Sequence record: LR588166.1
Length of the DNA: 64,000 nt
Direction: 5' to 3' (one strand)
In this document: positions 970 through 45,973 of the stretch, piece by piece
Position numbering within the stretch: position 1 is the first letter of the stretch
How the letters are laid out: each line of letters begins with the position of its first letter
Made by a program: the position numbers and the translations under genes
Notes under the pieces: generated by a model
Told to the model about the DNA's origin: nothing
The model's input: the letters and a program-made list of their open reading frames with translations, nothing else
Database searches by the model: none

Positions 970-1144
970 CATTACATATATTGTATCAGTTACTGCTAGA
1001 TGCACATCTATATCTGAAGATGCGTATAGTGATTTCGTTACATTTTGTATAGCAGATGTATTTGGTAATTATATAATTCAATATATAACAGAACGCAACA
1101 ATAGGTTTATAGCTGTATATGAATATACATTTTCTACAATATGA
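959..1144 (+). CDS. hypothetical small protein
   Basis: ATG at 959 overlaps upstream stop. Confidence 0.45.
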   Translation: MSASITYIVSVTARCTSISEDAYSDFVTFCIADVFGNYIIQYITERNNRFIAVYEYTFSTI

Positions 1145-1406
1145 TATGTCTGATTCAAGTATATTATGCAATATAACAAGATATTCGTATACAATAAGAC
1201 TGAGTAATTATACATCGTTTCATTTTGTTATATCCGGAATGGGTAGGCCTATAACAAAAGTTGTATCCAAGATACTGTGTAATCCTATTCATATAATAGA
1301 TGTGTGTGTAATGTTTCGCATCATGCAAAAGATACGATTTTTTCGTACAATGACACTCAATTACACAGTTCTTTGCATTTGTTTACTATATCATTTTGGA
1401 AGTTAA
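1119..1406 (+). CDS. hypothetical small protein
   Basis: 95 aa ORF in packed run. Confidence 0.45.
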   Translation: MNIHFLQYDMSDSSILCNITRYSYTIRLSNYTSFHFVISGMGRPITKVVSKILCNPIHIIDVCVMFRIMQKIRFFRTMTLNYTVLCICLLYHFGS

Positions 1407-1440
1407 AAGCATATACTATGATAAACGTATCCTACATAAT

Positions 1441-1935
1441 ATGATATTTCAAAAACCATTTATAGAATTGAATAGTATCCCAGATTACACTCATCCGGGC
1501 GGATTTGCATACCAACGAAAAAATCATATACACGAAGGCGTAGACCTTTATTGTAAAAATAAAGAACCTGTGTTTACAATGTTAACGGGTAAAGTAGTTA
1601 ATATAATAAAAGATTTTACAGGTCCGGGTTGTGGAACACCTTGGTGGAATAAAACAAGTGCAATAGTAATAGAAGACGTATTTGGTGTATGGGTATACGG
1701 CGAAATATTAGTAGGAAATTGGATTAACATAGGAGATACCGTACCAGCCGGAACATGTATCGGCAGAGTAGAACAAGTGTTAAAAAAGAACAAAGGACGT
1801 CCTATGTCTATGCTTCATGTAGAACGATATACAAAAGGAACTACAAATTCTATTGGTTTATGGCAATTAAACACCAGTAGACCTGAAAATTTATTAGATC
1901 CAACACCTTTGTTACGGCGTATCATAAATGAATAA
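1441..1935 (+). CDS. M23 family zinc metallopeptidase (peptidoglycan hydrolase-like)
   Basis: HEGVD (HxxxD) motif, V..G..V.AG..IG.V segment, MLHVE in place of HLHFE; alternative TTG start at 1396. Confidence 0.85.
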   Translation: MIFQKPFIELNSIPDYTHPGGFAYQRKNHIHEGVDLYCKNKEPVFTMLTGKVVNIIKDFTGPGCGTPWWNKTSAIVIEDVFGVWVYGEILVGNWINIGDTVPAGTCIGRVEQVLKKNKGRPMSMLHVERYTKGTTNSIGLWQLNTSRPENLLDPTPLLRRIINE

Positions 1936-2269
1936 TATATTATATATTCAGAATTTTATAAGAAGTAGAAAATTAGAAGCAGAATACGGATGTATAGTTA
2001 CCATTAATGATATTACAGGAGCTAGAGAATTTACAGCATATCATCTCAATAACTGGCATAATTGTTCATTTATATCCTATAATAATTGCAGTATAGATAT
2101 TATTGCATTATGTAACTATACACACACGATAGTATGTGGATCAGATAATGCAGGTTTTATAATAAACAATAATAACAGAAATATTCTACTGTCAGTAGTT
2201 TCTAACAAGACGTCATATTCGTCTTGTTATTCATCTTCTGTAATTATAAATATTTCTGTTTTATTATAA
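1928..2269 (+). CDS. AT-rich paralog family protein
   Basis: MNNILYIQN start; overlaps M23 stop. Confidence 0.6.
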   Translation: MNNILYIQNFIRSRKLEAEYGCIVTINDITGAREFTAYHLNNWHNCSFISYNNCSIDIIALCNYTHTIVCGSDNAGFIINNNNRNILLSVVSNKTSYSSCYSSSVIINISVLL

Positions 2270-2270
2270 A

Positions 2271-2594
2271 ATGAATTTAATATTTTGTATAGCTAGCATT
2301 GATAATATGCAAATAGGTATAGGCCGGTCAATCGGAGATATAAACAATATAATATATATTCGAACTAGCCCCTCTAATGATATAATCAAATATATAACAG
2401 AAGTAAAATATGGTAAAACAGTATCACTTATGTTAAATCTCGATATATCAGTATTTAAAGAATTATTTATTTTTATTTTGTCATGTAAATGTAAACACAT
2501 CACTGAACTAAGAATATACAATAAAGTAGTATTTTATTTTTATTCTGATACCAGAAGATCTTTAACAGATTTGTTATATTACATAGGTCGGTGA
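2271..2594 (+). CDS. AT-rich paralog family protein
   Basis: 107 aa, starts 1 nt after upstream stop. Confidence 0.6.
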   Translation: MNLIFCIASIDNMQIGIGRSIGDINNIIYIRTSPSNDIIKYITEVKYGKTVSLMLNLDISVFKELFIFILSCKCKHITELRIYNKVVFYFYSDTRRSLTDLLYYIGR

Positions 2595-2706
2595 CAGTAC
2601 ATTTACAGAAAAATATAATATCTTATGTATTATTCATTATAAAAACTCTGTTGTGTTATTAAGTGTTGTATGTTAGTGTGCAAGTTAATTAAATGCGGAA
2701 CATCAA

Positions 2707-3000
2707 ATGGATATTATTCTTTTTATATCAAATAATACATACTATATAACATCAACAAGTAATAGCACATTCTTATTATACAGATTTGATCAAAAATGTA
2801 TCTATGTTGTAACAAAACATCTTAATTCACACCCGGTAGTGATAGACGACGGAAGTAATGGTTGGGGGACAATATATGAGATTCCCGCACTAGTTCAGTT
2901 TTACACAGATATTTTTAAATTTTCTGTACATCACGAGTTAATTCAAATATATGTGCTCACAAAAGTAGGTCAATTTTTCTCTAAGATTGTTACTTACTAA
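2707..3000 (+). CDS. AT-rich paralog family protein
   Basis: MDIILFISNNTYYI motif. Confidence 0.7.
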   Translation: MDIILFISNNTYYITSTSNSTFLLYRFDQKCIYVVTKHLNSHPVVIDDGSNGWGTIYEIPALVQFYTDIFKFSVHHELIQIYVLTKVGQFFSKIVTY

Positions 3001-3322
3001 TATAATTGTACAATACATAGGCAATTTGATGGACAATATATTTTATATTTCGTACGAAATAGCTAGTTGCCGGTATTCTAGTCCAACTACATTTCAATTA
3101 ATTAATAAACACAATAGAGAATTTTATGCAATACGTTTGGCTGCAGGATACCCAAGCGACATTTTCGATTTTGATTGGAAACAAAAAATCTTATTAACGT
3201 CTAAATATTGTAATAAGCTTTTATTTCTTATTAGTAGAGAAAAGATACAGGTAACTACCAAGTTAAGGATATTTTATTGCCTTAGTAACGTATCTGCCAA
3301 ATCGGATCAAGTTACACTATGA
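2987..3322 (+). CDS. AT-rich paralog family protein
   Basis: 111 aa ORF; MDNIFYIS motif suggests a slightly downstream ATG. Confidence 0.55.
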   Translation: MLLTNIIVQYIGNLMDNIFYISYEIASCRYSSPTTFQLINKHNREFYAIRLAAGYPSDIFDFDWKQKILLTSKYCNKLLFLISREKIQVTTKLRIFYCLSNVSAKSDQVTL

Positions 3323-3831
3323 ATATCATACCATTAATTTTAATTAGTGTATACTAGTTATTGTGACACTATTAAATATGTCAATTAGATAAATTATTAA
3401 TGAAAAATCTATTTCCTACTGGATGCATATTTAATATATTGGTATTATCTTATCACACAGATACAATATATACTGTATGTTACTCAGATTGTCGTGTTAT
3501 TGCACTAAACAGTTATTATACATACTATATACCTTTAAATGACTAAATTAATACTTACAATTTCTATTAATACCAAACAGATAGCATTATTAAACGATGT
3601 TGTGCATTTTCGAAATTATAATAAAATAGTATACTTTATAAATTTTTTTATTTAAAACTAAGTCATTAATTATTATGGACAAGTTAATAACAGATAGTTT
3701 TATTATCATTTATATAAGTAAAAATTGCTCCGAAATTTATGTCACCCTCAGACATGCTTTTATATGCAATTACGATGGGGTTGGGTTTTTTAGATCATGA
3801 CTAGTTGTGTTAATTAGGATAACTATACTTA

Positions 3832-4125
3832 ATGAAATATGATTTTATATTACATATAAGTAATAACACAAATTGTATTATATTCGACACAAGTATTACC
3901 TTTGTTGGCAATAAAGGTATATTCTTTTATAAAATAATACCAATACACTTGCATAGTATGTGTAATTTTCCTTATATAGATAACAGTTGGTCAAACTATA
4001 TTTCATTACCTATAATTATACAATATTATACAAATAAACTGGTATATTTACCGTCTATTATACTTTTTCGTCAAAATAAATCTAATATATCAGCAGATAC
4101 TGTATTTCGTACAAATATGTTATGA
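3832..4125 (+). CDS. AT-rich paralog family protein
   Basis: FILHISNNTNCI motif. Confidence 0.7.
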   Translation: MKYDFILHISNNTNCIIFDTSITFVGNKGIFFYKIIPIHLHSMCNFPYIDNSWSNYISLPIIIQYYTNKLVYLPSIILFRQNKSNISADTVFRTNML

Positions 4126-4403
4126 ACGATGAATTAATACTATTGTTAAGTAAAGAGACTTATATAACTTCATTTTCTCATAACTGTGTAGACTTGTTCA
4201 GCGCTGCTGGAATTATATTTTATAGCATATCTATACCATACATGGGTTCCCGTGCTGCTAGCAGAATACATCATTTATATTTGTGTGTGTTTACACTATC
4301 TCCTTTTATAATACAATCATTTTGTCGTGTAATATTCGATAATAAGTATACAATTTGCATATCATATAACGGTACACTTATATGGAAAGGTCTTTACCAA
4401 TAA
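4122..4403 (+). CDS. AT-rich paralog family protein
   Basis: ATGA overlap; LILLLSKETYI. Confidence 0.7.
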   Translation: MNDELILLLSKETYITSFSHNCVDLFSAAGIIFYSISIPYMGSRAASRIHHLYLCVFTLSPFIIQSFCRVIFDNKYTICISYNGTLIWKGLYQ

Positions 4404-4472
4404 CTTTTTCAGTTGCTATAACATGCACAATGTGCAATAATAAAAAACAATGTGCAATTGTGAATAAAATAC

Positions 4473-4778
4473 ATGAATATTATCATTAACATTCAAGCAT
4501 CAACATCCGAAATCTTCTTTGACACAGACTGTATCACGTTAATAACGAGTTTAGGCGGTCATGTTCTTTCGATAAACCGAAGAACAGGAAAAGGCGCAGT
4601 TGTACTTCATAACATAAAGTTAGATTCCATATATCGTATTATACTATTACAGCACGCAACTGTATCACTTGTTGTATGGGGTGCTATAGACATTAAAGTA
4701 TCATTTAAAGACATAGCCGATGAATACATTTTCCTTGCTATAGGAAGAAGATATTATCACGGCGAATGGTTAAAATAA
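4473..4778 (+). CDS. AT-rich paralog family protein
   Basis: MNIIINIQASTSEI; internal ILLQH. Confidence 0.7.
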   Translation: MNIIINIQASTSEIFFDTDCITLITSLGGHVLSINRRTGKGAVVLHNIKLDSIYRIILLQHATVSLVVWGAIDIKVSFKDIADEYIFLAIGRRYYHGEWLK

Positions 4779-5050
4779 TTCTGACTATGCATAAAATTTA
4801 TTATGACGAAATTTTAGAAATATCTAAAAAAGCTAGATTAATTGTAAATTACTCTGGCATCGTTTCTATATACACAAAATCTTCTAATTATTATAATATA
4901 AATTATAATTTTTATAGTAATCCATTTAATCAGTGGAATAGGGCAATATTTATAGCATCTAAACAATGTGGACACATAGCATTTTCTAGTAACCGGATGC
5001 GTATATTAACTGATAAAAATATATTGTGGTATTATAGTACTCTTCTATAA
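4766..5050 (+). CDS. AT-rich paralog family protein
   Basis: 94 aa, overlaps upstream ORF. Confidence 0.6.
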   Translation: MVKIILTMHKIYYDEILEISKKARLIVNYSGIVSIYTKSSNYYNINYNFYSNPFNQWNRAIFIASKQCGHIAFSSNRMRILTDKNILWYYSTLL

Positions 5051-5065
5051 GGTATAGATCGAAAA

Positions 5066-5368
5066 ATGGAAATACCTAATGACAAGTGTATGTTGTTAAT
5101 ATTTCTGAGTAGTGTCTCCGATACTATACACATAGAAATCAGTTTTAGAAAAAGAATTAGAAAATATTTGCACACACTAAAAATATACAAAGAAGATAAC
5201 ATTTGCATATTTATAAATGGCATATTACTATTTAAAAAAGATATATGTAACGATATAATAATTCCTATTTTGATACAATCGAACACAAGATCTATATCAC
5301 TGCATAACGACTTCTTAGAAATATTTTCTAACAGATATTATTTGATGTTATTTAGAAAAATGTCTTAA
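5066..5368 (+). CDS. AT-rich paralog family protein
   Basis: internal ILIQSNTRSI. Confidence 0.65.
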   Translation: MEIPNDKCMLLIFLSSVSDTIHIEISFRKRIRKYLHTLKIYKEDNICIFINGILLFKKDICNDIIIPILIQSNTRSISLHNDFLEIFSNRYYLMLFRKMS

Positions 5369-5382
5369 ATAGGCAAAAATGC

Positions 5383-5634
5383 ATGATTGTTATACTTCTT
5401 TCACACTTTACACGTGAACTAAATGCAGAATTTAATGAATTAAAACTTACTGTACATGGTAAAAGATTAGCGCAAATATATCCGACAGCATACATAGATA
5501 CTAACGTCTTATGCCATTATATGCGTGAACTTGATTTCTTACTATTATACATTTCTAACAATGCAAAAACGATACAATTAGACTATTCACACAGAATAAT
5601 ATTATATCACTCTCCCATACCGCACTATATTTAA
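5383..5634 (+). CDS. AT-rich paralog family protein
   Basis: MIVILLSHFT; internal LLYISNNAKTI. Confidence 0.7.
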   Translation: MIVILLSHFTRELNAEFNELKLTVHGKRLAQIYPTAYIDTNVLCHYMRELDFLLLYISNNAKTIQLDYSHRIILYHSPIPHYI

Positions 5635-5646
5635 AGAGATAAGTAT

Positions 5647-6036
5647 GTGAACTATTATTCAAACAGTTGTTGTACAGAAACTACATTATTGAACTCTTTT
5701 AATGAGCAAGTTAATGTCCATCTAAACCCTATGTGCAACCTACCATTTATTATATCAAGTAATTCCCATAAACTAATCTACGGACAGTATTTTAACAATA
5801 CAAGAGGTCCAGGCATATACATTGCTAATATAAATGGAATTGTGTTTCTATGCTCTGTTGTTACTATTTCTAATTTTCGAATGTGTTTTAGTATGCTTAA
5901 TGAAATAGATCCTTTGTATATACAATACAAATGCGATTCAATAAAAACAATAAACACACTTACATATTATAGACTAAATGTCAATTCATTACTTAATACA
6001 ATGTTATGTAAAGAATATTATGAATTTAATACTTGA
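5647..6036 (+). CDS. AT-rich paralog family protein
   Basis: 129 aa; internal FIISSNSHKL and LYIQY. Confidence 0.6.
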   Translation: MNYYSNSCCTETTLLNSFNEQVNVHLNPMCNLPFIISSNSHKLIYGQYFNNTRGPGIYIANINGIVFLCSVVTISNFRMCFSMLNEIDPLYIQYKCDSIKTINTLTYYRLNVNSLLNTMLCKEYYEFNT

Positions 6037-6304
6037 ATTAGTAAGAAACACAAGTAAAATCATACCGCATGATGGTCTAAATGCTGCTAGATTTATTCTT
6101 GTTAATGCCTATTATATAAAAATAGCATCTTTTTGTTTATCATTTTCTACATGGACCAGCCAGACATTTTTAAGAATAAACCAGTTTCAAATGTCAGAAT
6201 CTACGTTAGTTATCATATCTAATAAAATAAAGAAGATCAAAAGAATGGAAAAATCATACGCTTTAATTTTTGACGAATCATATATCCGGTTGAAAATCGA
6301 ATGA
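6020..6304 (+). CDS. AT-rich paralog family protein
   Basis: MNLILELVRNTSKI at ATG 6020. Confidence 0.65.
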   Translation: MNLILELVRNTSKIIPHDGLNAARFILVNAYYIKIASFCLSFSTWTSQTFLRINQFQMSESTLVIISNKIKKIKRMEKSYALIFDESYIRLKIE

Positions 6305-11197: not shown

Positions 11198-14100
11198 TGT
11201 TTATAAGTTTTATTCCGCCTGTTGCAATGTTGATACGACTACAATCAAATCTACACATTATCTGTTTTGATTCTGTTTATAATAGTATAGTGTTTTGCGA
11301 TAAGGATTACGACGAAATACATTGCTGCTTATGGTAGCGTGTTTGCATTTAACGCAAAAACATGTTATACAGTATTGTTTGTTGAGTATTTTGACATTGT
11401 TGTTTCTAAAAATCTTTTATATAAAGGATTAATATGCATAATATATTTAAATTATCATATTGTACAAATATGTTTAAATTTAAAATATTATGGGATCAAA
11501 AAGTATACCTATGCTCGTTTATGTCATTGCGGTATACTACCCTATATATTTCTGCAGGTCGTATCAGATAAATGGTAACAAATATATTAGAATTAATGTA
11601 TGTATGTCACCATACATATAATATAACAACTAACGGCTACTATAACATTATCTTCTTAAATAAAGATAATAATATTATCTTTGTTTTGTATTAAAACAAA
11701 TGGGAATATTTCTCTTATCACGCAATACTTGCTACATTTGTGTTATACATGTCAGACGTATTGTATACAAGATTAAAATGTATGACAGACATGGCAATTA
11801 TGTGCGTACAATTAATGTTATCTAAGAACATATCAAATTATATAGAATTTTGTTGTATGTAATACTGTTTAATAATGGCATTAGATATTGATAAAATAAC
11901 ATACATTTCATTTAACTCATGCTATATATCAGTTAATTGTTTTAGTGTTATTATATATTATGAGTACGGTAGATTAATTTTATATGATGATACCCCCGGG
12001 CTTATATAAGAACGTATTCTACATACAGTATAATGTGCGTCATATCAGCATATATTATTTTGATGCATGCGAATGTAATATATTACAGGTAGAATGCAAT
12101 AATTTTCTTACTCTAACATATAAATTAAATGAAAAAACCAATAAGTAATATAGTTGAATTATCGCTTAATACGCACCAGTTTAATACCAATTATATAACT
12201 AGTGCTCATTGTTTAGTATTTTATAATGCGTCGTCATATCCTATACATTATGTTCGTTTACACACAAACAAGCGTTAACACTTATGTCGCCGGTATCAAT
12301 TCATAATATAGTTTGTATTCAACACTATCTTAATAGATGGTATACTAGAATATCCCCAACAGGGATTAATGTGTATTCAGATTCATATGTTAGAATTAGA
12401 ATAAATGTTCATAAATAAAAATATTATAAATCACGATATACATTATGATATGTTGCAGGTATCTTCGTGCGCACATAGAATAGATTCATCGCTATGTAGC
12501 ACATATCTATTGGCATGCATTTATAATAGTAATGAAAAAATTATTATAATTAGTGTTGCATATCTAAGATGAATGGCATGAAAGATATAATAGAATTTTC
12601 ATCGAATACATACGAAATATGTGCCAATACAGCAAGACTTAGAGATATAGTATACTACTCGATACTCATAAAGTCAAAAGACGGTCTTGCATTTTATATG
12701 GTAGACTCGTTTGCATATATAACATGACCAGTATCCTTGAATGTTCTTACAATACTTCTAATATTATGTTTCGTTTTTGTAAAAACAGTGACATTTTAGT
12801 TGTGAACTTTCTAAACAAAAATGCTAACATACATTTCATTGTAATAATTAGATACAAATAAACATATCGTTAATTACTAATACATAGGAGAGTAATAAAT
12901 GAATAGAGAAGCAAAGAAAAATGTTTCTGTATTTGTTATTCAGAATCATACTTTTAGAGTTCATGTTGTACGATATGATCCTGCGAGAATTTCAATATAT
13001 CTCTCACTTGTACATAATTGTGTTGCATCTTAAGAACTATATCTGTATAATGTAGGTTACATTTGCATGTATAGGATTATCTTTCATATAATATATGCTT
13101 ATTAACTATACGACATGTATTGAATTACTTTATAGTATTGTATGATTCGTAAAAATATAGTTCTAATATCACATAACACGTCAAAAATAATATTAGAAAG
13201 AAAAACAAGTAAAGTATTACGTGTTTCTATGTTTAAATCAATTGGAAAATACTACTACCATTATTATACGGCGTGTGGAAATATATAATGCAAGATCATC
13301 ATTTCACTACACTGTTGTATATGTCTAATCGTGCAGATAGAATAAAGATTTTTCGACAGCCTTCCTGTCTTATTGTATATATTAAGTCAGGTATGTTATA
13401 TATTAATAAACAATTTTTAAAATGTTAGAATATATAGATACTCTCAAATATAATTACATTTTAACTGTATGCAGCGGTGTAGAGTCTATATCATTTGAAT
13501 CATTTACTAGATCAGTAATATCAGTTTCCATAATATACAATAATATTACTATCTTTCCGTGTCAAACCACACGAACTATACTGTATGGTGTATAATCTTA
13601 TTTTTATTTCTTGTAATGTTTCTTTAATTAGTTTTTCTATTTTTAATAAAACATTTGAAGTTTATATTTATGGAAAAATGTTATTGGTAATTTATTATAC
13701 AGGACTGCGTATATGTTAGATGTATTGCTACGGTTCCAACGCAGAGTGGATACAATTAAGGTGGAGTTAATATGGCGTCACTTGCATTTTTATGAAAAAG
13801 CCGGCGAGGAGTTAGAGTTATTTCATATTATATTTCTGCCGCCCGATCACCGAAATATTAATTAACAAAAACAAGTTGTATTTTTCGGCATAAGAATTTA
13901 TGATTAAAGATACAAACAAAGAATCACCTATTATTAAAGAATTATATTTTATATTAAGATTGTAAGTAAAATAAAATACTTTTAGAATCTAAAACTAAAA
14001 TGATCGATTGGGTATTTAAATTGTCTGCTAGTTGCTACGAAATAGACGGACAACACAGTGAGTCAATAAGAATATATAATTCATATTGTCTTTTAGGAAC

Positions 14101-14472
14101 TATACAATGTTATTGTGCTCAGTTAAAAATAAATTTATATAAATTTTAATATTGTGGGAAGAATTCTTTTAAATAGGCATACTATATGAATGATCTATTA
14201 CAATACCAACTCACATTATGTTCCATATCTTTGCAGAAAGCTCGTTTTAAGTCAGGCAATGTGTATTACATTCTAATTGAACGTAACGACAGCGGTAGGT
14301 ATTCCCGAGATGTAAAAATACTTAAATGATATGCGTATATTTGTAATATCACAAAATTGCATGACTATCAGACTTTTTATCATACATATTTCATTAAAGA
14401 TGTAAATTATGATTCAATTTGTGTATTATATAAAACGAATAGCAGAATTGTAATACATCCGAGTTTTACAGT
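11197..14472 (+). other. run of roughly 20 coupled mini-ORFs (40-56 aa), mostly below the ORF-track cutoff
   Basis: Hand-translated examples: 11197 MFISFIPPVAMLIRLQSN, 12129-12278 MKKPISNIVELSLNT, 12284-12418 MSPVSIHNIVCIQH, MTSILECSYNTSNI, MIRKNIVLISHNTSKI, MLDVLLRFQRRVDTI. Confidence 0.6.
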
Positions 14473-14474
14473 AG

Positions 14475-14672
14475 ATGAATATATTCGATCTGTCTTATAA
14501 TTCTTCATTTATTTTGATGAAATCGAATAGAATATACATTAGTAATGATACCTATTATAATTATTCTGTAGGCGCTACATATGTATTACCTGCAATAACA
14601 AAATATATACATCAAACATTCTATGTAAACGCTGCAATATATAGATTTTTAGATACAGGTATACTAGTATGA
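14475..14672 (+). CDS. one-unit paralog family protein
   Basis: MNIFDLSYNSSFI. Confidence 0.65.
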   Translation: MNIFDLSYNSSFILMKSNRIYISNDTYYNYSVGATYVLPAITKYIHQTFYVNAAIYRFLDTGILV

Positions 14673-14857
14673 AATTCAATATATTTAAATTGCAAAGAGG
14701 ATGTCACTTTATAGATTGTCATTTTTATGACATTCTTAGATTTTCAAAACCTACATATTTTCGAGATGCTGATAGAATAACTATATTTTCATTAATAGGT
14801 ACTAATAGTATCGGAATTTACGCGGATATGTATAAAGGATATGCACAAACCATATGA
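14669..14857 (+). CDS. one-unit paralog family protein
   Basis: MKFNIFKLQRGCHFI; overlaps upstream stop. Confidence 0.65.
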   Translation: MKFNIFKLQRGCHFIDCHFYDILRFSKPTYFRDADRITIFSLIGTNSIGIYADMYKGYAQTI

Positions 14858-15138
14858 TTGAAATATTAATATTTTCGAGTGTTAGTGATTATATTAATAT
14901 AAGCCATGATATGGCACGGCTATATAATCTTAATGGTGTTAGTGAATTAATATTTGCATCAAAACCATACAAGTATATTGTATTAACTAATTTAAAAAAT
15001 CGTATAGGTATATTTTGTATTTCAAATATAATAAGTGAAAGGGTGATGGGAGATATTACTAGTAATGAATGTTGGGCTTATCCTTGGCCTCCAGATACTG
15101 GCATAGATGTATATATTGATTTCCTGTATAAAAATTGA
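14854..15138 (+). CDS. AT-rich paralog family protein
   Basis: MIEILIFSS; GIFCISN. Confidence 0.65.
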   Translation: MIEILIFSSVSDYINISHDMARLYNLNGVSELIFASKPYKYIVLTNLKNRIGIFCISNIISERVMGDITSNECWAYPWPPDTGIDVYIDFLYKN

Positions 15139-15169
15139 TGAGCTTTCTACTAAATACACAATATAACCA

Positions 15170-15197
15170 TAGACAAATAAGTGCATTATGCTAATAT
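15170..15197 (+). promoter_or_regulatory. sigma70-like promoter
   Basis: TAGACA-16-TGcTAATAT (extended -10). Confidence 0.5.
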
Positions 15198-15203
15198 ATA
15201 CAT

Positions 15204-15605
15204 GCTTACTAAACAGTTACTTGTTAAGTAAGTTAAAAAGTCTGTAACAGTGATGTTACAGGATACACAGGCAAATACGGTTGGAAGATGCTGTGTAAAG
15301 AACAAATATCCAGCTCATTCCTAGGCATAATAGCCTACACAATATATTTGAATGGGCATAAAAACTTCCAAAGAACCTTCGAAATTTTCTTATAGGATAG
15401 TGTATTAGAAGGAATGCACTATCAGGAAGCTGTAGGTGATGGTTGCTATCCCAGACAGTCCTTTCTAAAATACTTTAATATGATATAAAGTTCTATGCAA
15501 CCGTATACATGCTGTAAGATATTAAATTACACCATGTATTAAACGTAAAAGCAAAACCTTCAGTTAGTAATCTCGCAGTGAAGGGGGTAGGTGAGTGCTA
15601 CCCAA
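15204..15605 (+). ncRNA. candidate structured ncRNA or long 5' leader (~400 nt)
   Basis: ORF-free; about 9 hand-identified helices incl. CTGTAACA-GTGA-TGTTACAG; long-range TACGGTTG/CAACCGTA. Confidence 0.55.
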
Positions 15606-15646
15606 ACTCAACAAACAACTAATGGTCTAGAAAAGGTATAGTATAC

Positions 15647-16054
15647 ATGCAACATACTCACATTCGTTTCTACAACGAAGAAACTCAACAGATCGATAAC
15701 CGCCGTGGCGCTACTGTTGCCTGGGAAACCGCCGGCAACAAGATCCGTATTTCCGTAGCAGCATGTTCGGAAATGGATAACTTCAACCGCAAGACCGGAC
15801 GTGAACATGCTGCTAGCCGTCTCGAAAGCGGCGACTACATCGAGTTTAACGGCACCGAACTTCTTAATGCACAGATGTCTTCTGTAAGTCATGTGCAGTC
15901 TGAAGGTCTCGTTCGTGCTATGTGCTTCTTGCTAGCACAAGGCAAAGGCGATCTATATTACCCGGCAAGCGAAGGTCAGCTTCGCAGCGAAGCCGAGTGC
16001 AATAGCTACAACGCCCTCGAGTACCTGAAACACCAAATGGGTATTCATCAGTAA
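15647..16054 (+). CDS. conserved phage hypothetical protein (CS..DNFNRKTGR motif)
   Basis: 135 aa, host-like codons; motif common in phage hypotheticals. Confidence 0.8.
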   Translation: MQHTHIRFYNEETQQIDNRRGATVAWETAGNKIRISVAACSEMDNFNRKTGREHAASRLESGDYIEFNGTELLNAQMSSVSHVQSEGLVRAMCFLLAQGKGDLYYPASEGQLRSEAECNSYNALEYLKHQMGIHQ

Positions 16055-16067
16055 GTATTCGGTTATT

Positions 16068-16110
16068 CGGAATTGCGATTTAGGTTTTGGAATTCTAAAT
16101 CGCAATTCCG
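16068..16110. repeat. perfect 16-bp inverted repeat (terminator or processing hairpin)
   Basis: CGGAATTGCGATTTAG / CTAAATCGCAATTCCG with 11-nt loop, right after the 16054 stop. Confidence 0.8.
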
Positions 16111-16330
16111 GTTTCCAAATTCGATTTTAGGCACAAACTCAGATCCGCATTTGCATTTTGCATTTACATTTTGTGTTCTGAGTGTATATGCAAAATGCAA
16201 TCGCGCATGTTGTCGATGCATTGGCTAATCTTTTATTTTTGATAGTTTAGAAAAGATTAAGAACAGAAACTATCTGTAAATTAATAAAAATAACATTTAC
16301 ATTACATACACATATGCATATACTATATAC

Positions 16331-16610
16331 AAGTTATGCGCTGTTGCATACGTAAATACCTCCTATGTTGTTTAGATATGTCGATTCTGGTATAACCAGA
16401 TAGACCTAAGGATGATGCTAGTGATTCCTTAGTATTGTATATTCTAGCTGAGTATAAAGAGTAAGGGGCTTTATACAAATAACAATTCCCTAGGCAAGAT
16501 ATACCGCTCCGTTGTGCTGACGAGCATAATTTGCCCAGATACAGAGCACGTGACTGGTCTGAGGAGCATTTATATCAGAAAGGCAGACTTATGTTTGCCT
16601 TTCTTTTTGA
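16331..16610 (+). ncRNA. candidate structured sRNA (~280 nt) with its own promoter and terminator
   Basis: TTTACA-17-TATACT at 16296-16324; serial hairpins; terminator AGAAAGGCAGA/TTTGCCTTTCT-TTTT at 16577-16608. Confidence 0.5.
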
Positions 16611-16627
16611 GCAGATATTCTCTTATT

Positions 16628-16753
16628 CACTTCCTTATTCATTTCCTTATTCATCTCTATTTCATTTGTCACTTCCTTATTCATTTCCTTATTCATCTCT
16701 ATTTCATTTGTCACTTCCTTATTCATTTCCTTATTCATCTCTATTTCATTTGT
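16628..16753. repeat. 3 x 42-bp pyrimidine-rich tandem repeat
   Basis: Unit CACTTCCTTATTCATTTCCTTATTCATCTCTATTTCATTTGT at 16628, 16670, 16712. Confidence 0.9.
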
Positions 16754-16757
16754 TATT

Positions 16758-16883
16758 GCAAATAAGACTAATTCTTATTTGTGTTTGTAATTTCATTTGT
16801 TATTGCAAATAAGAATTAGTCTTATTTGCATTTGCAACGAAAAAGAATATGCAAATAATAACTATTCTTATTTGCATTTGCAC
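16758..16883. promoter_or_regulatory. cluster of three Fur-box-like palindromes
   Basis: TGCAAATAAGAATTAGTCTTATTTGCA at 16804-16830 plus two variants. Confidence 0.6.
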
Positions 16884-17047
16884 TGCCTAGTATATGGATT
16901 GGTAGCATACTTGGAAATGGATAGTAAATAAGTAGTTGATTTGTTTATAAATTATAATTCTACACCATACTGATTGACCTTGCTATATATAGCTCGCGCG
17001 CGTATGCAAGATGGTAAAAAATAATTTAAAAATATTTTAAAAAATGC

Positions 17048-17171
17048 TTGACTTTCCATTACTACGACCTTAAAGTGCGAACTGTAGACGCAGTGTGTAG
17101 AGCGCTACATAGTAAGCAACGCAGAAAGTAAACAAAAAATGCTTGACGCAATGCAAACTAGGCTCTACACT
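17048..17171 (+). promoter_or_regulatory. tandem sigma70 promoters with A-tract UP elements
   Basis: TTGACT-17-TAAAGT and TTGACG-17-TACACT, each preceded by AAAAAATGC. Confidence 0.75.
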
Positions 17172-17254
17172 GTATACAAGCTTAAGGGGTAAGTGCCCCG
17201 AAAGTGTAGTAAGTAAACAACATAATCCTTCCATCAGCTACAGAGGTATACAAC

Positions 17255-17959
17255 ATGTCCGTACATATCACTCGTCAACGTACCGACAAGCAGCACGTCC
17301 TGGCACTGGCAATCAACGGCGTGGTCATCGGCCAGACGATGGCTACTTACACCACCCCGAGCAAGCGCACCTGGTCGGCGACCGCCGAAGTCGAGCTGGC
17401 AGACGGCACTGTCGTTCAGTTCGAGCAGAAAGAAGTGTTCAGCGCGATCCGCATCACCCGCGAAATCGAGCAGGCGCTCGACGGCAAGGAACTGGCGGCC
17501 AAGTACACCCCGGAACCGAAAGTTCCCGGGCAGAAGGGTCCGAAACCGCTCACCGACGAAAGCCGGCTCAGCAACGCGATCGCGATCGTCAAGGCGGCCA
17601 TCACCCACACCGGCTTCGACGAAGCTACCCTGGTGTTCGACGGGGTCGACAAGGCCAACTTCGAGCAGAACAGCACTTCCGTCGGCAACAAGCTGCGTCG
17701 CCTGGGCTTCGTCTTCGAACTCGGCGCCGGCAAGGCGAACAGCGGCAAGGGCTTCCTGATCAACCGCAAAGCGCAGGCCGAGGCAGAAGCCGACGAACGT
17801 AAGGCCAAGCGCGAAGCCGAGAAGAAGGAACGCGAAGAAAAAGCGGCGGCTGCCAAGCGCGAAGCCGACGAACGTAAGGCCAAGCGCGAAGCCGAGCGCG
17901 CCGAAAAGGTCGCTGAAAAGAACGCAGCGATCACCGGGGCAGCACAGGAAAGCAAGTAA
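17255..17959 (+). CDS. VFSAIRI-family protein 1 with a second domain and Ala/Lys/Glu coiled-coil tail
   Basis: 234 aa, GAGG RBS, GC-rich host-like codons; homologous to 36150 and 42554. Confidence 0.85.
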   Translation: MSVHITRQRTDKQHVLALAINGVVIGQTMATYTTPSKRTWSATAEVELADGTVVQFEQKEVFSAIRITREIEQALDGKELAAKYTPEPKVPGQKGPKPLTDESRLSNAIAIVKAAITHTGFDEATLVFDGVDKANFEQNSTSVGNKLRRLGFVFELGAGKANSGKGFLINRKAQAEAEADERKAKREAEKKEREEKAAAAKREADERKAKREAERAEKVAEKNAAITGAAQESK

Positions 17960-17974
17960 TTGCCCAACTGCGCC

Positions 17975-18002
17975 GAAAGGGGGAGCTATTGCTCCCCCTT
18001 TC
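17975..18002 (+). terminator. intrinsic terminator
   Basis: GAAAGGGGGAGC-TATT-GCTCCCCCTTTC. Confidence 0.8.
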
Positions 18003-23774: not shown

Positions 23775-24269
23775 GTGTTCGAGATGGAGCAAATAGTGAA
23801 TATGCGAGAAGTGACATTTCTTTCCGCAGTGGATGCCAGCAAGATCGAGACGCCGAGCAACGTCATCAGCATCGGCAGCAAGGGTGATTGGTATGCCTTT
23901 GCCTGCGATCACAAGCGCGTTCTGCGGCTGGAGTTTGATGACGTAGACGGATACGTGGGAAGCGATGGCTTTCGAGTGTTCAGCCACATTGACGCCAAGC
24001 AGATCCACGACTTCGTGAACGAGTGTGGTGATGAACCGATCATTGTTCACTGCCAAGCAGGCATGAGCCGATCCGCTGCGGTTGCCAAGTTCCTGGCTGA
24101 CAAGCGCGGCTACACGTTGAACCTGTCGAAGCCTTGCCTTGGAACCACGCAATTCTACAACCGCCACGTCTACGGAACGTTGAACCTCAACGACGCCGAA
24201 AGCATGAGCGCCTATTACGCAGAGATGGAGCTAGCCGACCGGCTGCGCGGCCATCCAAAGGAGTCCTAA
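23775..24269 (+). CDS. protein-tyrosine/dual-specificity phosphatase-like protein
   Basis: IIVHCQAGMSRS = HCX5R(S/T) P-loop; GC-rich. Confidence 0.85.
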   Translation: MFEMEQIVNMREVTFLSAVDASKIETPSNVISIGSKGDWYAFACDHKRVLRLEFDDVDGYVGSDGFRVFSHIDAKQIHDFVNECGDEPIIVHCQAGMSRSAAVAKFLADKRGYTLNLSKPCLGTTQFYNRHVYGTLNLNDAESMSAYYAEMELADRLRGHPKES

Positions 24270-24271
24270 TC

Positions 24272-24571
24272 ATGCCTGACATGAGAGAAGAGTTTGAAGC
24301 CGCAATCTTTGCGGAAGTGAATGAACAGCGGGCTGCTGAAGGTGAATTTGTCCTTCAGCATCCAGAAGGGCTATTTGCCCGCGATGACGATGGCTCCTAC
24401 TTGATCCGTTGGGTCAAGAGCGCATGGTGGGCCTGGCAAGCCAGCCGCGCAGCTCTGAGAGTGGAGTTGCCGAAACCTCACCCTGCATTTGAGTACGCAC
24501 CTAGAGCCAAGGTTTTCAATATAACTGACGTTGAGGTAGCCCTCCAGCAAGCCGGAATCGAGGTGAAGTGA
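24272..24571 (+). CDS. Pseudomonas prophage-type hypothetical protein
   Basis: AAGGAG RBS; MREEFEA...AWWAWQASRAALRVELP pattern. Confidence 0.8.
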   Translation: MPDMREEFEAAIFAEVNEQRAAEGEFVLQHPEGLFARDDDGSYLIRWVKSAWWAWQASRAALRVELPKPHPAFEYAPRAKVFNITDVEVALQQAGIEVK

Positions 24572-24718
24572 ATGAGAACGCCCATCTTCATCGGCGGATC
24601 AATTGGCATAGGAATCGCCTATCTGATGAATCCTGAATATCCCGCTATCGCGCTTGCAATGGTGTTTAGCGCGGGTACCTCATTGTTCATTCACTATCTA
24701 TCTGAGGTATGGCCATGA
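24572..24718 (+). CDS. small membrane protein (48 aa)
   Basis: Hand translation MRTPIFIGGSIGIGIAYL...; coupled at both ends. Confidence 0.6.
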   Translation: MRTPIFIGGSIGIGIAYLMNPEYPAIALAMVFSAGTSLFIHYLSEVWP

Positions 24719-24789
24719 CCGACCACGCAGAGCTGCGGAGGCTGGCTAAAGAAGTGATCCGAATTGAACGAAATGAGGATGCAGCATGA
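24715..24789 (+). pseudogene. truncated Ead/Ea22-like N-terminus (24 aa)
   Basis: MTDHAELRRLAKEV... then stop overlapping the next ATG. Confidence 0.4.
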
Positions 24790-25322
24790 GCATTGACTGG
24801 ACCAAGGCACCAGAGGGTGCGACGCACTACCAACCGGAATCACGCGGCTTCCATGCGGCATGGTTCCGACTTCAAGGGGGGAAGGCTCGCGAAATGTGGG
24901 TCGTGAGACCCAGCCGCGCGCTTGAGCACATCATCGATCCGACTGTCTTCGACGAGAGCATGCAGAACCTGATCGCCCGCCCCGTAGAAGCTGCCACCTG
25001 GAACGGCCAGGGTCTACCGCCGGTTGGCCTGATGGTGGAGTGGAAGGCAGGCCTTGATCACGACTGGCAGCGCGTAACTGTGCTTGCCTACGCCAATGGC
25101 GACGCGTGGTTTCAGCCCGAGGATGGCCCGTCTTTCATCGTCGGCAACCCGGCAAACTTCAGGCGTATCCGCACCCCCGAGCAGTTGGCCGCCGAGGAGC
25201 GGGAAAAGGCGATTAATCAGATGATTTCTGATGCTGGATACGTAGATCCGAAGATTGGCACATTTGTGGCTATGCGCAATCTCTACGACGCCGGCTACCG
25301 GCGCCGGGAGGAAGGGAAATGA
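24786..25322 (+). CDS. Pseudomonas phage hypothetical protein (MSIDWTKAPEGATHY family)
   Basis: Characteristic N-terminus and GLPPVG / RTPEQLAAEERE segments. Confidence 0.85.
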   Translation: MSIDWTKAPEGATHYQPESRGFHAAWFRLQGGKAREMWVVRPSRALEHIIDPTVFDESMQNLIARPVEAATWNGQGLPPVGLMVEWKAGLDHDWQRVTVLAYANGDAWFQPEDGPSFIVGNPANFRRIRTPEQLAAEEREKAINQMISDAGYVDPKIGTFVAMRNLYDAGYRRREEGK

Positions 25323-25585
25323 GCAGACTGACCGCTGAGCAAGCCCGTGACATAGCGCGAGCGAAAGACGATGTCGATACTATCCTCAACGACATCGCCA
25401 AAGCAGCCGCAGAAGGAAAGTACGTGTACACTACCCGCGCCTATGGGTTCGGCACAGGCGGCGGGCGGCGCAGCGACGCGATCCTCAAAGTGTTGCGTAG
25501 CCTCGGCTACGACTGTGCGGTGCATGCTGAGGGACGCCAGTCTGTTGACCTGTGGCTTGAAGTGAAATGGGGAGACAAGCCATGA
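25319..25585 (+). CDS. hypothetical protein
   Basis: ATGA overlap, GC-rich codons. Confidence 0.8.
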   Translation: MSRLTAEQARDIARAKDDVDTILNDIAKAAAEGKYVYTTRAYGFGTGGGRRSDAILKVLRSLGYDCAVHAEGRQSVDLWLEVKWGDKP

Positions 25586-25944
25586 CTGACACCAACGAAA
25601 TAAAAAAGCTAGCAAAACTGGCTACGCCGGGTCCGTGGTATGCGTCCTGGGAGGAAGGCGATGATATTGCATGGTCGAATCTGTTTCCTGTAATCCGAGC
25701 AGGCAATGGCGAAGTCGTGATCGGTAACGAAGGCTTTTACAGCGATCTGGACCAGGATAAGGCTAACGCCACTTTCTGTGCTGCTGCCAATCCCCGAGCC
25801 GTCCTAGACTTGCTGGACGAGAACGACAGACTAAAAAAGGAGAACGATGAACTTCGTCACCTTTGCTCCTGCGCTAAGCAATATAACCTCAGCATGACAC
25901 TGCGCAGAATGATTGACGCAGTCCTTAAAAGAGACAAGCCATGA
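25582..25944 (+). CDS. Ead/Ea22-like family protein
   Basis: LAKLATPGPW ... AAANPRAVLDLLDE. Confidence 0.8.
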   Translation: MTDTNEIKKLAKLATPGPWYASWEEGDDIAWSNLFPVIRAGNGEVVIGNEGFYSDLDQDKANATFCAAANPRAVLDLLDENDRLKKENDELRHLCSCAKQYNLSMTLRRMIDAVLKRDKP

Positions 25945-26129
25945 CCGACATTAAAAAGCTGAAGGAGTTAGCGGAACGGGCTACTCCTGGTCCCTGGTCT
26001 GCGTCTTGGAAGGAAGGCGATGACCATTTGGGGCGAATTGCTTACTTCGTGTCAACTGGTCAATACAACATCACAAAAGAAACAGTCTTCGACATAGTGA
26101 ATGTGGTTCCCGAAAATGTGTGCTCCTGA
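25941..26129 (+). pseudogene. second Ead/Ea22-like copy, short or frameshifted
   Basis: LKELAERATPGPW N-terminus, early stop, lacks ANP..VL.LLDE C-terminus. Confidence 0.45.
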
Positions 26130-35678: not shown

Positions 35679-36149
35679 CATTGCAAATACAAATAATAAT
35701 TATTCTTATTTGCATTTAGTGATGTAAATAATTCTTATTTGTAATTGCGATTAATTCTTATTTGCTACAATAGATAGAATAAGAATAATTCACATTTGCA
35801 ATGCCGCTAAAAGCGCTGTAAGCGCTGTATGCTGTGTAGTAATGCTAAGCAATGCATTAGTACAGCTACGCGCACAAACGCTGTTATACGCGCTTGTAGC
35901 GCGTTTTAGGGCCCATGCGCATGCGTACACCTGTAGCTTTACATAGCAAAATGCAGAAAAGACGTCGTCTATTAACGTGCCTGTCTTAATAGAAATATAC
36001 AATTGTACAATACCAGCGAAATCCTACACACTACAGACATGCAAACAAGCAACGTGCTTGCAAGCATAAAAGTTTTTAAAAAGTAGTAGACATTGTGTAG
36101 CATCCCTAGTAAGCTACACACACATAAACAACACAACGGAGTACAAGCT

Positions 36150-36617
36150 ATGTCTAATGTAAGCATCCCTGCAGTAACGGTAGAGAATATCGGCACCCTG
36201 CGCATTGTGCGCACCGCTAACAAGGAGGTCGGAAGTGTGCTCGACCTAAAAGTTAACGGGGTAGTAGTAGGGCAAGCTTTCCCGCTCTACAGCACAAAAA
36301 CCCAGCGTAGCTGGAACGCGAGCATGCACGCTACCGTTAACGGCGTAGAGGTGCAGTTTGCACAGGAAGGCGTGTTCAGTGCAATCCGCATTGCACGGGC
36401 GTTCGAGGATGCAGTAAAGTATGCCGTTAGCAACGGCGAGCAAGGGCAACCCCTCCCCGCGCCGGCGGCGCAGTCCGATGCCCCGGCAACGGCAGAAGCG
36501 CAAGCAGAAGCCCCGGCGGCGCAGACCGAGGATGCGCCGGAGACCCCGGCAGCCGAAGCTAAGCCCGCCCGCAAAGGCGGCAGCAAAGGCGGCAGCAAGG
36601 GCGGCAGCAAAAAGTAA
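36150..36617 (+). CDS. VFSAIRI-family protein 2 with Ala/Pro/Lys/Gly tail
   Basis: TAGACA-17-TAAGCT promoter, GGAG RBS, ATG 36150; tail KGGSKGGSKGGSKK. Confidence 0.85.
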   Translation: MSNVSIPAVTVENIGTLRIVRTANKEVGSVLDLKVNGVVVGQAFPLYSTKTQRSWNASMHATVNGVEVQFAQEGVFSAIRIARAFEDAVKYAVSNGEQGQPLPAPAAQSDAPATAEAQAEAPAAQTEDAPETPAAEAKPARKGGSKGGSKGGSKK

Positions 36618-36630
36618 GCGCTGCTAACAC

Positions 36631-36745
36631 AGGAAAGGGGCAACTGCCCCTTTCCTTTTATGCCCTAGTTGTAAATGCAAATTAATCTTATTTGCATTTG
36701 CACAAGTCAATCTCCTGTTGCATTACTGCGGTAAGATGTTAGTAT
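36631..36745 (+). promoter_or_regulatory. terminator + Fur-like box + sigma70 promoter cassette
   Basis: AGGAAAGGGG-CAACTG-CCCCTTTCCTTTT, then TGCAAATTAATCTTATTTGCATTTGCA, then TTGCAT...TGtTAGTAT. Confidence 0.75.
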
Positions 36746-36785
36746 GTGCTTAGCAGTAACACATAACTAGCAGGAGCAATAGACA

Positions 36786-37034
36786 ATGGCTAAAGTATTG
36801 CATGTTAACAGCATCGGCAACATCGCCGAAGTGTTTACATCTGTAGACCTCGATAGTGCCTTGTTGCACGCAATCAAACGCTGTGCAACGATGGGCAAGG
36901 TTGAGGTTGTTGGTCCCAACGCTCCCGTGTTTGCTAGACACTACGACGCACTGACGGCGTACGACGTGCAGTGGCGCCTCGTTCCTCCGGGCTGCGGCGT
37001 TACCGTGTACGTCATTGCCGAAGACAGCAATTAA
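36786..37034 (+). CDS. hypothetical protein
   Basis: AGGAG RBS. Confidence 0.75.
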   Translation: MAKVLHVNSIGNIAEVFTSVDLDSALLHAIKRCATMGKVEVVGPNAPVFARHYDALTAYDVQWRLVPPGCGVTVYVIAEDSN

Positions 37035-44924: not shown

Positions 44925-45080
44925 ATGACAAAAGAAATTGCTTTTACTGAAGGATTAAAAGCAGGCGCTCAAATAAAAGAAGGCAAAGCTATCCTAACTG
45001 ACTTCTTTCGATATTTCAATTCCTTACCAACTAATATGAGAACTTCTTTTATTATCGGTATCAAAACCGGTAGGAACTAA
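44925..45080 (+). CDS. small hypothetical protein
   Basis: MTKEIAFTEGLKAG. Confidence 0.55.
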   Translation: MTKEIAFTEGLKAGAQIKEGKAILTDFFRYFNSLPTNMRTSFIIGIKTGRN

Positions 45081-45167
45081 TAAGCATATTAATTTTCATA
45101 TTTTGGTAGACAAAGGTACTCACTGGATGCATACTGTATACATACAGAACATACGGAGTACAAAGGG

Positions 45168-45437: not shown

Positions 45438-45462
45438 CATCCTCTACCTGCGCCTGCAGATA

Positions 45463-45681: not shown

Positions 45682-45730
45682 CACCAACTAAAGCCCCGTC
45701 CCAGGCGGGGCTTCACTGAAGGAAAGGATC

Positions 45731-45940: not shown

Positions 45941-45973
45941 CCCACCACGCACAACCCGACAAGGAAACCAACC

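Follow-up and report, generated by a model that had tools for sequence, protein, structure and literature searches.

The 64,000-nucleotide (nt) stretch of record LR588166.1 analysed here (the window, in which a position equals the record position minus 186000) comes from the Pseudomonas jumbo phage vB_PaeM_MIJ3 (MIJ3), and the element under study occupies 15170–15646, between gp033, which ends at 15138, and gp035. We find that this element serves as the 5′ untranslated leader, ~443 nt long, of an early ~0.9-kb transcript, one that ranks with the most abundant early transcripts, and comparison with distant relatives indicates that its 5′ part contains a real, new structured RNA domain, co-inherited with gp035 in lineages whose proteins are ~42% identical. 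Transcription of the stretch has already been published; what is new is the conserved structured leader domain, which lies outside every described family, and no description of a structured leader at 15170–15646 was found in the literature searched. A first-pass annotation, made from the sequence alone, had read the element as a riboswitch-like leader for the gene at 15647 or as an independent non-coding RNA (ncRNA). The features referred to below are collected in Table 1.

Table 1. Features of the leader and its surroundings in the MIJ3 window, with the basis of each assignment or its main details.
Feature	Position	Strand	Details
Sigma-70-type promoter	15170–15197	+	−35 TAGACA 15170–15175, 16-nt spacer, −10 TAATAT 15192–15197
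P0, hairpin at predicted 5′ end	15204–15233	+	GCTTACT/AGTAAGT enclosing AACAG/TTGTT
P1, 8-base-pair (bp) stem with GNRA tetraloop GUGA	15242–15261	+	base-by-base check
P2, 7-bp stem, 20-nt loop with ACGGUUGGAAG	15264–15297	+	loop bases 15281–15287 in PK1
gp34, 35-amino-acid (aa) coding sequence (CDS) EST35_0034 in PA5oct	15288–15395	+	annotation; judged non-coding
P3, two-part hairpin	15313–15357	+	outer 8 bp, 1-nt 5′ bulge, inner 5 bp, 6-nt loop
PK1 3′ strand CUUCCAA	15365–15371	+	pairs with P2 loop 15281–15287, 77 nt upstream
P4, 4-bp stem, 11-nt loop	15372–15390	+	loop bases 15376–15380 (CCUUC) in PK2
P5, 9-bp stem, 10-nt loop	15396–15423	+	loop bases 15408–15412 (GAAGG) kiss P4 loop (PK2)
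Leader 3′ half, predicted hairpins	15424–15603	+	P6 15424–15466, P7 15472–15491, P8 15496–15553 (minimum free energy (MFE) only)
Leader 3′ half, further predicted hairpins	P9 15557–15584, P10 15585–15603	+	MFE only
Unstructured C/A-rich tract and Shine–Dalgarno (SD) sequence	15604–15646	+	GAAAAGG 15630–15636, 10 nt before ATG
gp035 homolog, 135 aa	15647–16054	+	third-position substitution pattern
15-bp hairpin after stop codon	16069–16109	+	probable transcript 3′ end; depth at floor by 16091–16161

Transcription of the leader and gp035

Over this region MIJ3 is 97–99% identical to nine other Wroclawvirus genomes (ten further records), with PA5oct at ~98%, and in PA5oct the corresponding region lies inside a 39-kb terminal repeat. 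The PA5oct study reported gp34 to gp105 as the highly transcribed early genes and annotated four abundant transcripts free of open reading frames (ORFs) as ncRNA (Lood et al. 2020, PMC7318152). The extended −10 promoter claimed at first pass was recovered at the head of the leader by a consensus scan (9/12 matches), in which the −10 hexamer is preceded by TG at 15189–15190, and both hexamers are invariant among the ten genomes. Since contigs do not map transcript ends, we infer the start, at about G15204 and 7 nt past the −10 element, from the promoter together with the rise in RNA depth.

This rise was seen when RNA-seq contigs of four runs were placed on 14600–16700, with silent flanks serving as the DNA control; three of the runs (X1, X2 and X3) come from one study and carry variants private to PA5oct, for example at 15156 and 16143. 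Summed contig depth is about 500–900 (X1, X3) or about 2,000–3,200 (X2) over 14600–14954 and about 0.5–9 thousand in the three runs just upstream of the promoter (15097–15167), reaches 75,000–138,000 in the bin 15168–15238, and stands at about 750,000–850,000 in the first full bin from 15239, an overall rise of ~300-fold. In X1 and X2 it remains at about 650,000–850,000 as far as ~16020, and in the bin 16091–16161 it is back to about 1,000–6,100, before a second block at ~16240–16590 that corresponds to ncRNA001. The rise, the high level maintained through the ORF and the fall at the hairpin behind it together identify the region as a transcribed 5′ leader. Upstream of the promoter, 11800–15140 holds ~25 tandem small + strand ORFs (44–94 aa), where RNA depth is ~300-fold below that of the leader.

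In all adapter junctions shown, + strand sequence is preceded by the read-2 adapter and followed by the read-1 adapter in complement, a pattern that, going by the adapter identities and the logic of dUTP-type directional libraries, we take to mean + strand RNA. The PA5oct RNA data are described as strand-specific (PMC7318152). The first-pass annotation had made its proposal depend on RNA mapping to this region, and RNA does map here, on the + strand, with very high depth across the leader and in continuity with the ORF at 15647.

The leader/ORF depth ratio is about 1.05–1.1 in X1 and X2, and in X3 depth goes from ~740,000 in the leader to ~170,000–190,000 in the distal ORF, the leader being about four times deeper. 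In the run of the independent study, only 15275–15731 and 16389–16587 (ncRNA001) assembled, the X8 contig reaching 85 nt into the ORF, and runs that contain 19–27% of the sampled words of the 2.1-kb stretch contain 50–76% of the leader words. From this 5′-biased depth and low-coverage recovery it follows that the 5′ part of the transcript is no less persistent than the coding part.

The hairpin that probably ends the transcript is also found in the relatives described below, where L011, L014 and L015 all retain GGRATTGC at the base of its stem. It falls within 15961–16200 (z = −7.5), which together with 16681–16920 (z = −8.5) makes up the two strongest-folding 240-nt windows of the 64 kb; 15961–16200 includes a second long hairpin at ~16144–16207, and both hairpins also occur downstream of the gp035 homologs in L011 and L014.

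A folded core kept across distant lineages

A BLAST search of phage records with the leader returned only 11 near-identical Wroclawvirus records, and BLAST detected no paralog of it elsewhere in the 64-kb window. More distant leaders were therefore taken from contigs that carry homologs of gp035, of which L011, L012 and L013 represent one phage and L014 and the 660-nt L015 two more lineages. Since the homologous proteins P0002 and P0003 are 43% identical to each other, these lineages are about equally distant from one another and from MIJ3. The ORF-free region upstream of the homolog measures 935 nt in L011 and 875 nt in L014, with L015 offering only 267 nt, and in L011 synteny with the next downstream structural gene is kept (42% identity). 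Neither BLAST nor Smith–Waterman alignment detected similarity above shuffles between the MIJ3 leader and those of the relatives.

All helices and both long-range pairings (PK1 and PK2) were verified in MIJ3, L011 and L014 with near-identical spacings, as were P4, P5 and PK2 in L015. By this comparison, the core at 15242–15423 (~185 nt) is predicted to be built of five helices, P1–P5, locked by PK1 and PK2. P1 carries a GNRA loop in the same place in each of the three lineages, with GUAA in L011 (1570–1589) and GAAA in L014 (1606–1617), and shows double changes at 7/8 pairs. P2 starts 0–4 nt after P1 and covaries with L011 and L014 at 7/7 pairs; its loops present UUGSAAG, within an ACGG(G)UUGSAAG common to MIJ3 and L014. 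The 3′ strand of PK1, with the consensus AACUUSCAA, lies 77, 84 or 89 nt away and forms all seven pairs in MIJ3, all seven in L014 (UUGCAAG/CUUGCAA) and six of six in L011. The central pair is G–C in MIJ3 and C–G in the other lineages, so that the TTGGAAG/CTTCCAA pairing noticed at first pass is conserved in relatives with a compensatory C–G to G–C flip.

Between the two strands of PK1, the layout of P3 recurs at L011 1644–1678 and L014 1672–1716, with an A/U-rich 3′ internal loop of 12 nt in MIJ3 and 7–12 nt across lineages. P4 abuts the PK1 3′ strand, has 4–6 bp and a 9–12-nt loop across lineages, and its stem covaries from AGAA/UUCU in MIJ3 to CGGUAU/AUACCG in L011, GGGA/UCCC in L014 and AGGU/ACCU in L015. 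P5 begins 5–10 nt further on, placing the strands of PK2 25–28 nt apart; these read CCUUC/GAAGG in MIJ3, CUGCU/AGCAG in L011 and L015, and CAACC/GGUUG in L014. With loop composition kept, the chance of such complementarity is 0.10, 0.003 and 0.05 in the three independent lineages, or ~1.6e-5 jointly. In L011, P1–P2 is flanked by CCUAAG (1562–1567) and UAUGG (1627–1631), the pair of strands that make up the classical 11-nt GNRA-tetraloop receptor; neither strand is seen in MIJ3 or L014.

Variation within the species fits the same map. The core has eight variable sites among the ten genomes, one of them at a paired base (T15243G in P1 of phage Callisto; binomial P = 0.011), PK1 and PK2 are invariant, and the polymorphisms in or just before P3 are at unpaired positions in 4/4 cases. 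Ahead of the core, C15214T in phage Paride retains its pair in P0 as U–G, and hairpins in an analogous position, just 5′ of P1, occur in L011 and L014.

A covariance model (R1), built from the ten MIJ3-group sequences with nested helices and run unfiltered over both strands of 21 kb of relatives, matched L014 1598–1742 (16.8 bits, E 3e-4) and L011 1566–1762 (16.4 bits, E 4e-4). Both were full-model, + strand matches at the predicted place, the next match having E 0.07, and L011 and L014 were the only non-self matches in 186 kb. In the R1-derived alignment 97.3% of cells are paired and 30/41 pairs show double changes, as against 28–44% of cells and 2–6 double-change pairs in slid-partner controls. 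Searched the other way, the 64-kb window gave a match at 15238–15426 on the + strand (71.3 bits, E 5e-14) with a model (R3) made from L011 and L014 only, the next match scoring 11.1 bits. A model of the 3′ half (R2, 15424–15608) found nothing at the expected places in the relatives, indicating that the method does not simply reward position and that only the 5′ core is detectably conserved. The structured RNA suggested at first pass is thus borne out, and shown to be conserved, by the helices, by PK1 and PK2 and by covariance-model matches in both directions across lineages. A pseudoknot-aware descriptor, whose result we regard as supportive only, matched all three leaders and in addition hit unrelated sequence twice in the window and once in L017, a more distant homolog locus; on shuffles its rate was 0.4–1.4 matches per 128 kb.

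Other routes to relatives gave little. A metagenome scan added one more identical copy only (L016), and protein-guided scans of viral contigs gave no further locus. A covariance search with default filters proved unreliable, in that the true window match was also missed; a MAFFT alignment of the cores was structurally wrong and was not used; and the 87 matches of a PK1 motif-pair scan of viral contigs were all chance matches inside genes of abundant phages. Searches of Rfam 15 (including GOLLD, ROOL, YrlA, tRNA, CrcZ and RsmY/Z) returned 0 matches at the gathering threshold over the whole window, nothing relevant at permissive E-values of up to 10 (15100–16700) or up to 0.5 (window), and nothing for the leader in any of the relatives.

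The individual stem arms listed at first pass are all present, at 15204/15227, 15242/15254 with the GTGA loop, 15264/15291, 15313/15350 enclosing 15322/15333, 15396/15415, 15506/15533, 15557/15579 and 15585/15598, three of the stems having one G–U wobble in place of a Watson–Crick pair. Its long-range complements exist as well, both TTGGAAG (15281) with CTTCCAA (15365) and TACGGTTG (15276) with CAACCGTA (15498), which extends to 9 nt. The proposal that these are alternative folds fared worse, as phage PAC2 carries G15503A, which disrupts the TACGGTTG/CAACCGTA pairing, and no positional counterpart of the partner strand exists in the relatives. In the 3′ half of the leader, within-species variation is concentrated in the loops of P7 and P8, and two stem changes, A15562G among them, retain G–U pairs.

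Possible roles of the leader domain

The explanation that we consider best, and to which we give an even chance, is that of a ~443-nt leader, started from an extended −10 promoter, whose pseudoknotted 5′ domain acts in cis on the gp035 mRNA. A transcript from about 15204, driven by the extended −10 sigma-70 promoter, would encode gp035 and end at the hairpin at 16069–16109, and its folded 5′ module, consisting of the 5′-end hairpin and the compact domain, would protect the mRNA from 5′-end-dependent decay. Stabilisers of the ompA 5′ untranslated type place a stem-loop within a few nucleotides of the primary transcript 5′ end, and P0 begins at the predicted +1 (15204), the start itself being deduced as described above. 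The domain would probably also dock a protein, possibly gp035, and so tune the fate of the mRNA; because domain and gene are co-inherited, feedback by gp035 is the most economical guess. A plausible model for such feedback and for mRNA stability is phage T4 gene 32, whose mRNA leader carries a 5′ pseudoknot that nucleates autoregulatory gp32 binding; it too is a phage mRNA with a pseudoknotted 5′ leader co-inherited with its gene, whereas gp035 has no known nucleic-acid-binding fold and the domain here is much larger and lies further from the start codon.

The leader does not qualify as a classical riboswitch, since its ribosome binding site (RBS), 220 nt downstream of the core, is predicted to be open and no terminator lies between them. 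A scan of 15170–15646 found no + strand terminator, and RBS sequestration is not predicted in MIJ3, L011, L014 or L015; the predicted mean unpaired probability from −20 to +10 is 0.54, compared with 0.44 for the leader, and the same pattern holds in L011, L014 and L015. Half of the first-pass proposal stands, in that RNA continuous with the ORF makes this a leader for the 15647 gene, and the riboswitch half is not supported, for want of a terminator or a closed RBS. We accordingly judge it improbable that P1–P5 form a metabolite or ion aptamer whose ligand would re-partition the P2-loop strand between PK1 and a second partner, altering gp035 expression. A conserved pseudoknotted domain does sit in a 5′ leader, and every lineage has a second complement next to the PK1 strand (9 nt at 15498–15506 in MIJ3, 7 nt at 1666–1672 in L014 and 6 nt at 1621–1626 in L011), but these partners occupy non-homologous positions, that of MIJ3 is broken in PAC2, the ~220 nt between core and RBS are poorly conserved and show no terminator/antiterminator arrangement, no Rfam aptamer matches, and gp035 carries no metabolic annotation that would hint at a ligand. 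As a pseudoknotted domain that is conserved ahead of a likewise conserved gene, with compensatory changes and no sequence conservation outside short motifs, the core does resemble orphan structured 5′-leader motifs and riboswitch candidates; it departs from them in lacking an expression platform and any ligand clue, in lying 220 nt from the RBS, and in being found in only three or four phage lineages, without an Rfam family.

The main rival, which we regard as possible but distinctly the weaker reading, is an independent or dual-function ncRNA, in which the 5′ domain is itself the product, as a trans-acting RNA or a ribonucleoprotein scaffold, with gp035 merely co-transcribed; such an RNA would, on this tentative view, accumulate through processing or by surviving 3′-to-5′ decay. 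The roughly fourfold deeper leader in X3 and its preferential recovery in low-coverage runs would fit, as would the RNA-gene-rich locus with conserved ncRNA001 just downstream, the Y-RNA-like or tRNA-like modules or tRNA just upstream in relatives, the L017 upstream RNA region that ends at its own terminator, and the conserved tertiary contacts, which suggest a compact three-dimensional fold. Against it, depth runs unbroken from leader into ORF in X1 and X2 and the X8 contig crosses the border, where no terminator or obvious processing site is found; moreover, the L017 upstream RNA has no similarity to the core, and no trans target is known. Among large phage RNAs, GOLLD and ROOL are ornate phage or prophage RNAs, often found beside tRNA genes, and both are in Rfam. 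Like them, the leader is phage-encoded and multi-helix with tertiary contacts, and its relatives adjoin tRNA or tRNA-like genes; unlike them, it matches neither Rfam family, its core is only ~185 nt, and it belongs to an mRNA leader rather than to a free-standing gene. Closer at hand, ncRNA001 and ncRNA002 of PA5oct share the terminal-repeat region with the leader and equal its very high abundance in the same data, and for both no database similarity was reported at publication (PMC7318152); the leader stretch differs from them in being annotated as a 35-aa CDS instead of an RNA, and it has no sequence in common with ncRNA001.

A reading in which the element has no specific function, being an AT-rich spacer with hairpins typical of the genome and an over-fitted similarity to relatives, appears quite improbable to us. 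Hairpin counts and z-scores lie inside the normal range of the genome, the descriptor had extra matches at unrelated places (two in the window, one in L017), and the architecture was first spotted by eye and only then tested. On the other side, the model matches are unique, strand-specific and in register both ways while the 3′ half control is blank, three unrelated sequence versions of PK2 all retain complementarity, three lineages have the GNRA loop, and polymorphisms avoid paired bases.

Least probable of all, in our judgement, is that the stretch encodes small proteins (gp34 and an extra ORF in PAC2) regulated by RsmA or other factors through GGA motifs. CDSs are annotated here in PA5oct and PAC2, and the gp34 ORF is intact in 10/10 genomes. 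Its ATG lies at the P2 stem, however, and is abutted by GGAAG with no spacer, so that no usable SD spacing exists; its variable sites fall at codon positions 3, 1, 3, 1, 3, 2 and 3, a pattern that is not codon-like; no equivalent ORF is called in the L011 and L014 leaders; and gp34 has no Pfam match and a non-significant PHROG match (E 0.23). The extra ORF is called in PAC2 only and depends on a 2-nt deletion. A leader-peptide attenuator was rejected likewise, the 35-aa ORF having neither SD spacing nor a counterpart in relatives, and no terminator behind it. As to RsmA, the first-pass statement that four of five GGA motifs are ANGGA needs correcting, as four are AGGA and one is strictly A-N-GGA. 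The five motifs (1.1 per 100 nt) compare with 5.8 expected from base composition, none of the five overlaps the SD sequence, and the P2-loop GGA is GCA in L011 and L014, so the RsmA-type reading was dropped, whether as target or as sponge. Sponges of the RsmY/RsmZ type have about 6 GGA per 100 nt; the leader is likewise an abundant RNA with AGGA motifs, two in hairpin loops, but its density is far lower, and its loop GGAs are engaged in PK1 and PK2, the one in PK1 not being conserved.

Several observations weigh against a folded leader acting in cis. The MFE z-score of the 477-nt span against shuffles is −4.1, but the minus strand folds equally well (z = −3.8), and although the span has nine hairpins of ≥6 bp where shuffles have 2.7 ± 1.7 (3/1000 reach nine), 16% of equal-sized windows of the genome have as many. 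Across the 64 kb, 240-nt windows have a mean z of −1.0 (standard deviation 1.6), with 11% below −3, and those of the leader give −1.7, −3.5, −1.7 and −0.2, so that thermodynamic stability here is ordinary for this genome. As thermodynamics does not single out the region, the case for structure rests on the comparison between lineages, and this too has limits: there are only three or four independent lineages, for which reason no phylogeny-aware covariation statistic was possible; the pair-count alignment was fitted to the model and leans towards structure; the covariance-model E-values come from a shortened calibration; and the R3 score is inflated because its alignment descends from the MIJ3-based model, although the uniqueness and register of its match are still informative. 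The depth of contigs gauges expression only poorly, and the contigs carry no strand and leave the start unmapped. No recognisable RNA-binding fold was found in gp035. Finally, the gene in L017 is separated from the upstream RNA region by a strong terminator and a promoter-like sequence, which means that leader and gene are not coupled in every case.

A further, bolder possibility, which we hold tentatively and think rather unlikely, is that the domain is the RNA partner of a gp035-family protein, or a ligand sensor, in a conserved, RNA-rich early host-takeover module of PA5oct-like jumbo phages. It would then represent a new class of phage ribonucleoprotein or riboregulator and not a passive stabiliser, and the module acting in host takeover would comprise the tRNA-like and Y-RNA-like genes (in relatives), the leader, gp035 and ncRNA001. 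That the leader–gp035–ncRNA001 module is older than the species argues that its RNAs are functional and not transcriptional noise. A few RNAs of unassigned role dominate the early transcriptome of PA5oct, which serves as a model for jumbo phages and is a candidate for therapy; here, an annotated 35-aa gene and an intergenic gap are re-read as a conserved folded leader, and the helix map, with two tertiary pairings and their natural compensatory variants, offers a direct handle on how extreme early-gene expression is sustained.

gp035 and the neighbouring RNA genes

Of the 15 sites in gp035 that vary among the ten genomes, 13 are third codon positions, and protein identity is 99–100%. The records of Ettore, Paride, Cassandra and Deifobo annotate minus-strand ORFs over the gene (15608–15892 minus); since substitutions are mostly third-position, the 135-aa ORF on the + strand is the real one. 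An exhaustive profile-free protein search identified full-length homologs P0002 and P0003 (42–43% identity), together with P0004 and P0005 (42–45% overall), and word-index protein searches returned only the same few. About 65 further proteins share only the N-terminal ~80 residues. This domain, with the motif A-x-A-x-C-S-x-x-D-N-F-x-R-K-x-G-R, is repeated 4–6 times in giant proteins of 2,759–3,841 aa (P0006, P0010 and P0019). gp035 has no sequence match in Pfam, PHROG or PDB, and its AlphaFold (AF2) model, made from the homolog alignment with a mean predicted confidence (pLDDT) of 91.9, has no structural neighbour in the PDB or the AlphaFold clusters.

Downstream of the gene, the PA5oct annotation places a 'putative lncRNA', ncRNA001, at ~16351–16586 of the window. 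Its sequence is conserved at 16381–16570 in MIJ3, 2736–2945 in L011 and 2776–2945 in L014, with the common blocks TCGATTCTGG...CCAGATAGA and a CUGACGAG loop that is invariant while the stems closing it covary; compensatory changes occur at 26/45 predicted pairs, and no Rfam family matches it. Right after ncRNA001, at ~16600–16700, stand direct repeats of a ~12-nt unit (TTCCTTATTCAT-like), an interval where 18 nt are inserted in phage Cassandra and where phage Deifobo diverges strongly.

Upstream of the leaders of the relatives, RNA genes lie at 737–838 and ~1250–1330 in L011, at 769–836, 1137–1240 and ~1480–1530 in L014, and at 2397–2479 in L017. They include sub-threshold Y-RNA-like (YrlA) matches of 36–46 bits (E down to 1e-7) and tRNA-like modules with a GGTTCGAATCC T-arm, the stem of which covaries between L011 and L014; in L017 the upstream gene is a true tRNA. 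None of these (Y-RNA-like module, tRNA-like module or tRNA) was found in the MIJ3 window, and a tRNA-like or YrlA module was rejected there, with no tRNA, no YrlA model match and the GGTTCGAATCC T-arm motif absent.

On the minus strand, the P1 hairpin (15242–15261) followed by a T-run was flagged as terminator-like; no minus-strand gene lies nearby. Over the window at large, islands of 48–56% GC occur at ~15650–16050, 17000–18000, 24000–26000, 36000–37000 and 45000–47000 in a genome of ~27–33% GC, the first island being gp035 and the second a gp038-like structural gene, and the islands may reflect a host-like codon usage of highly expressed genes.

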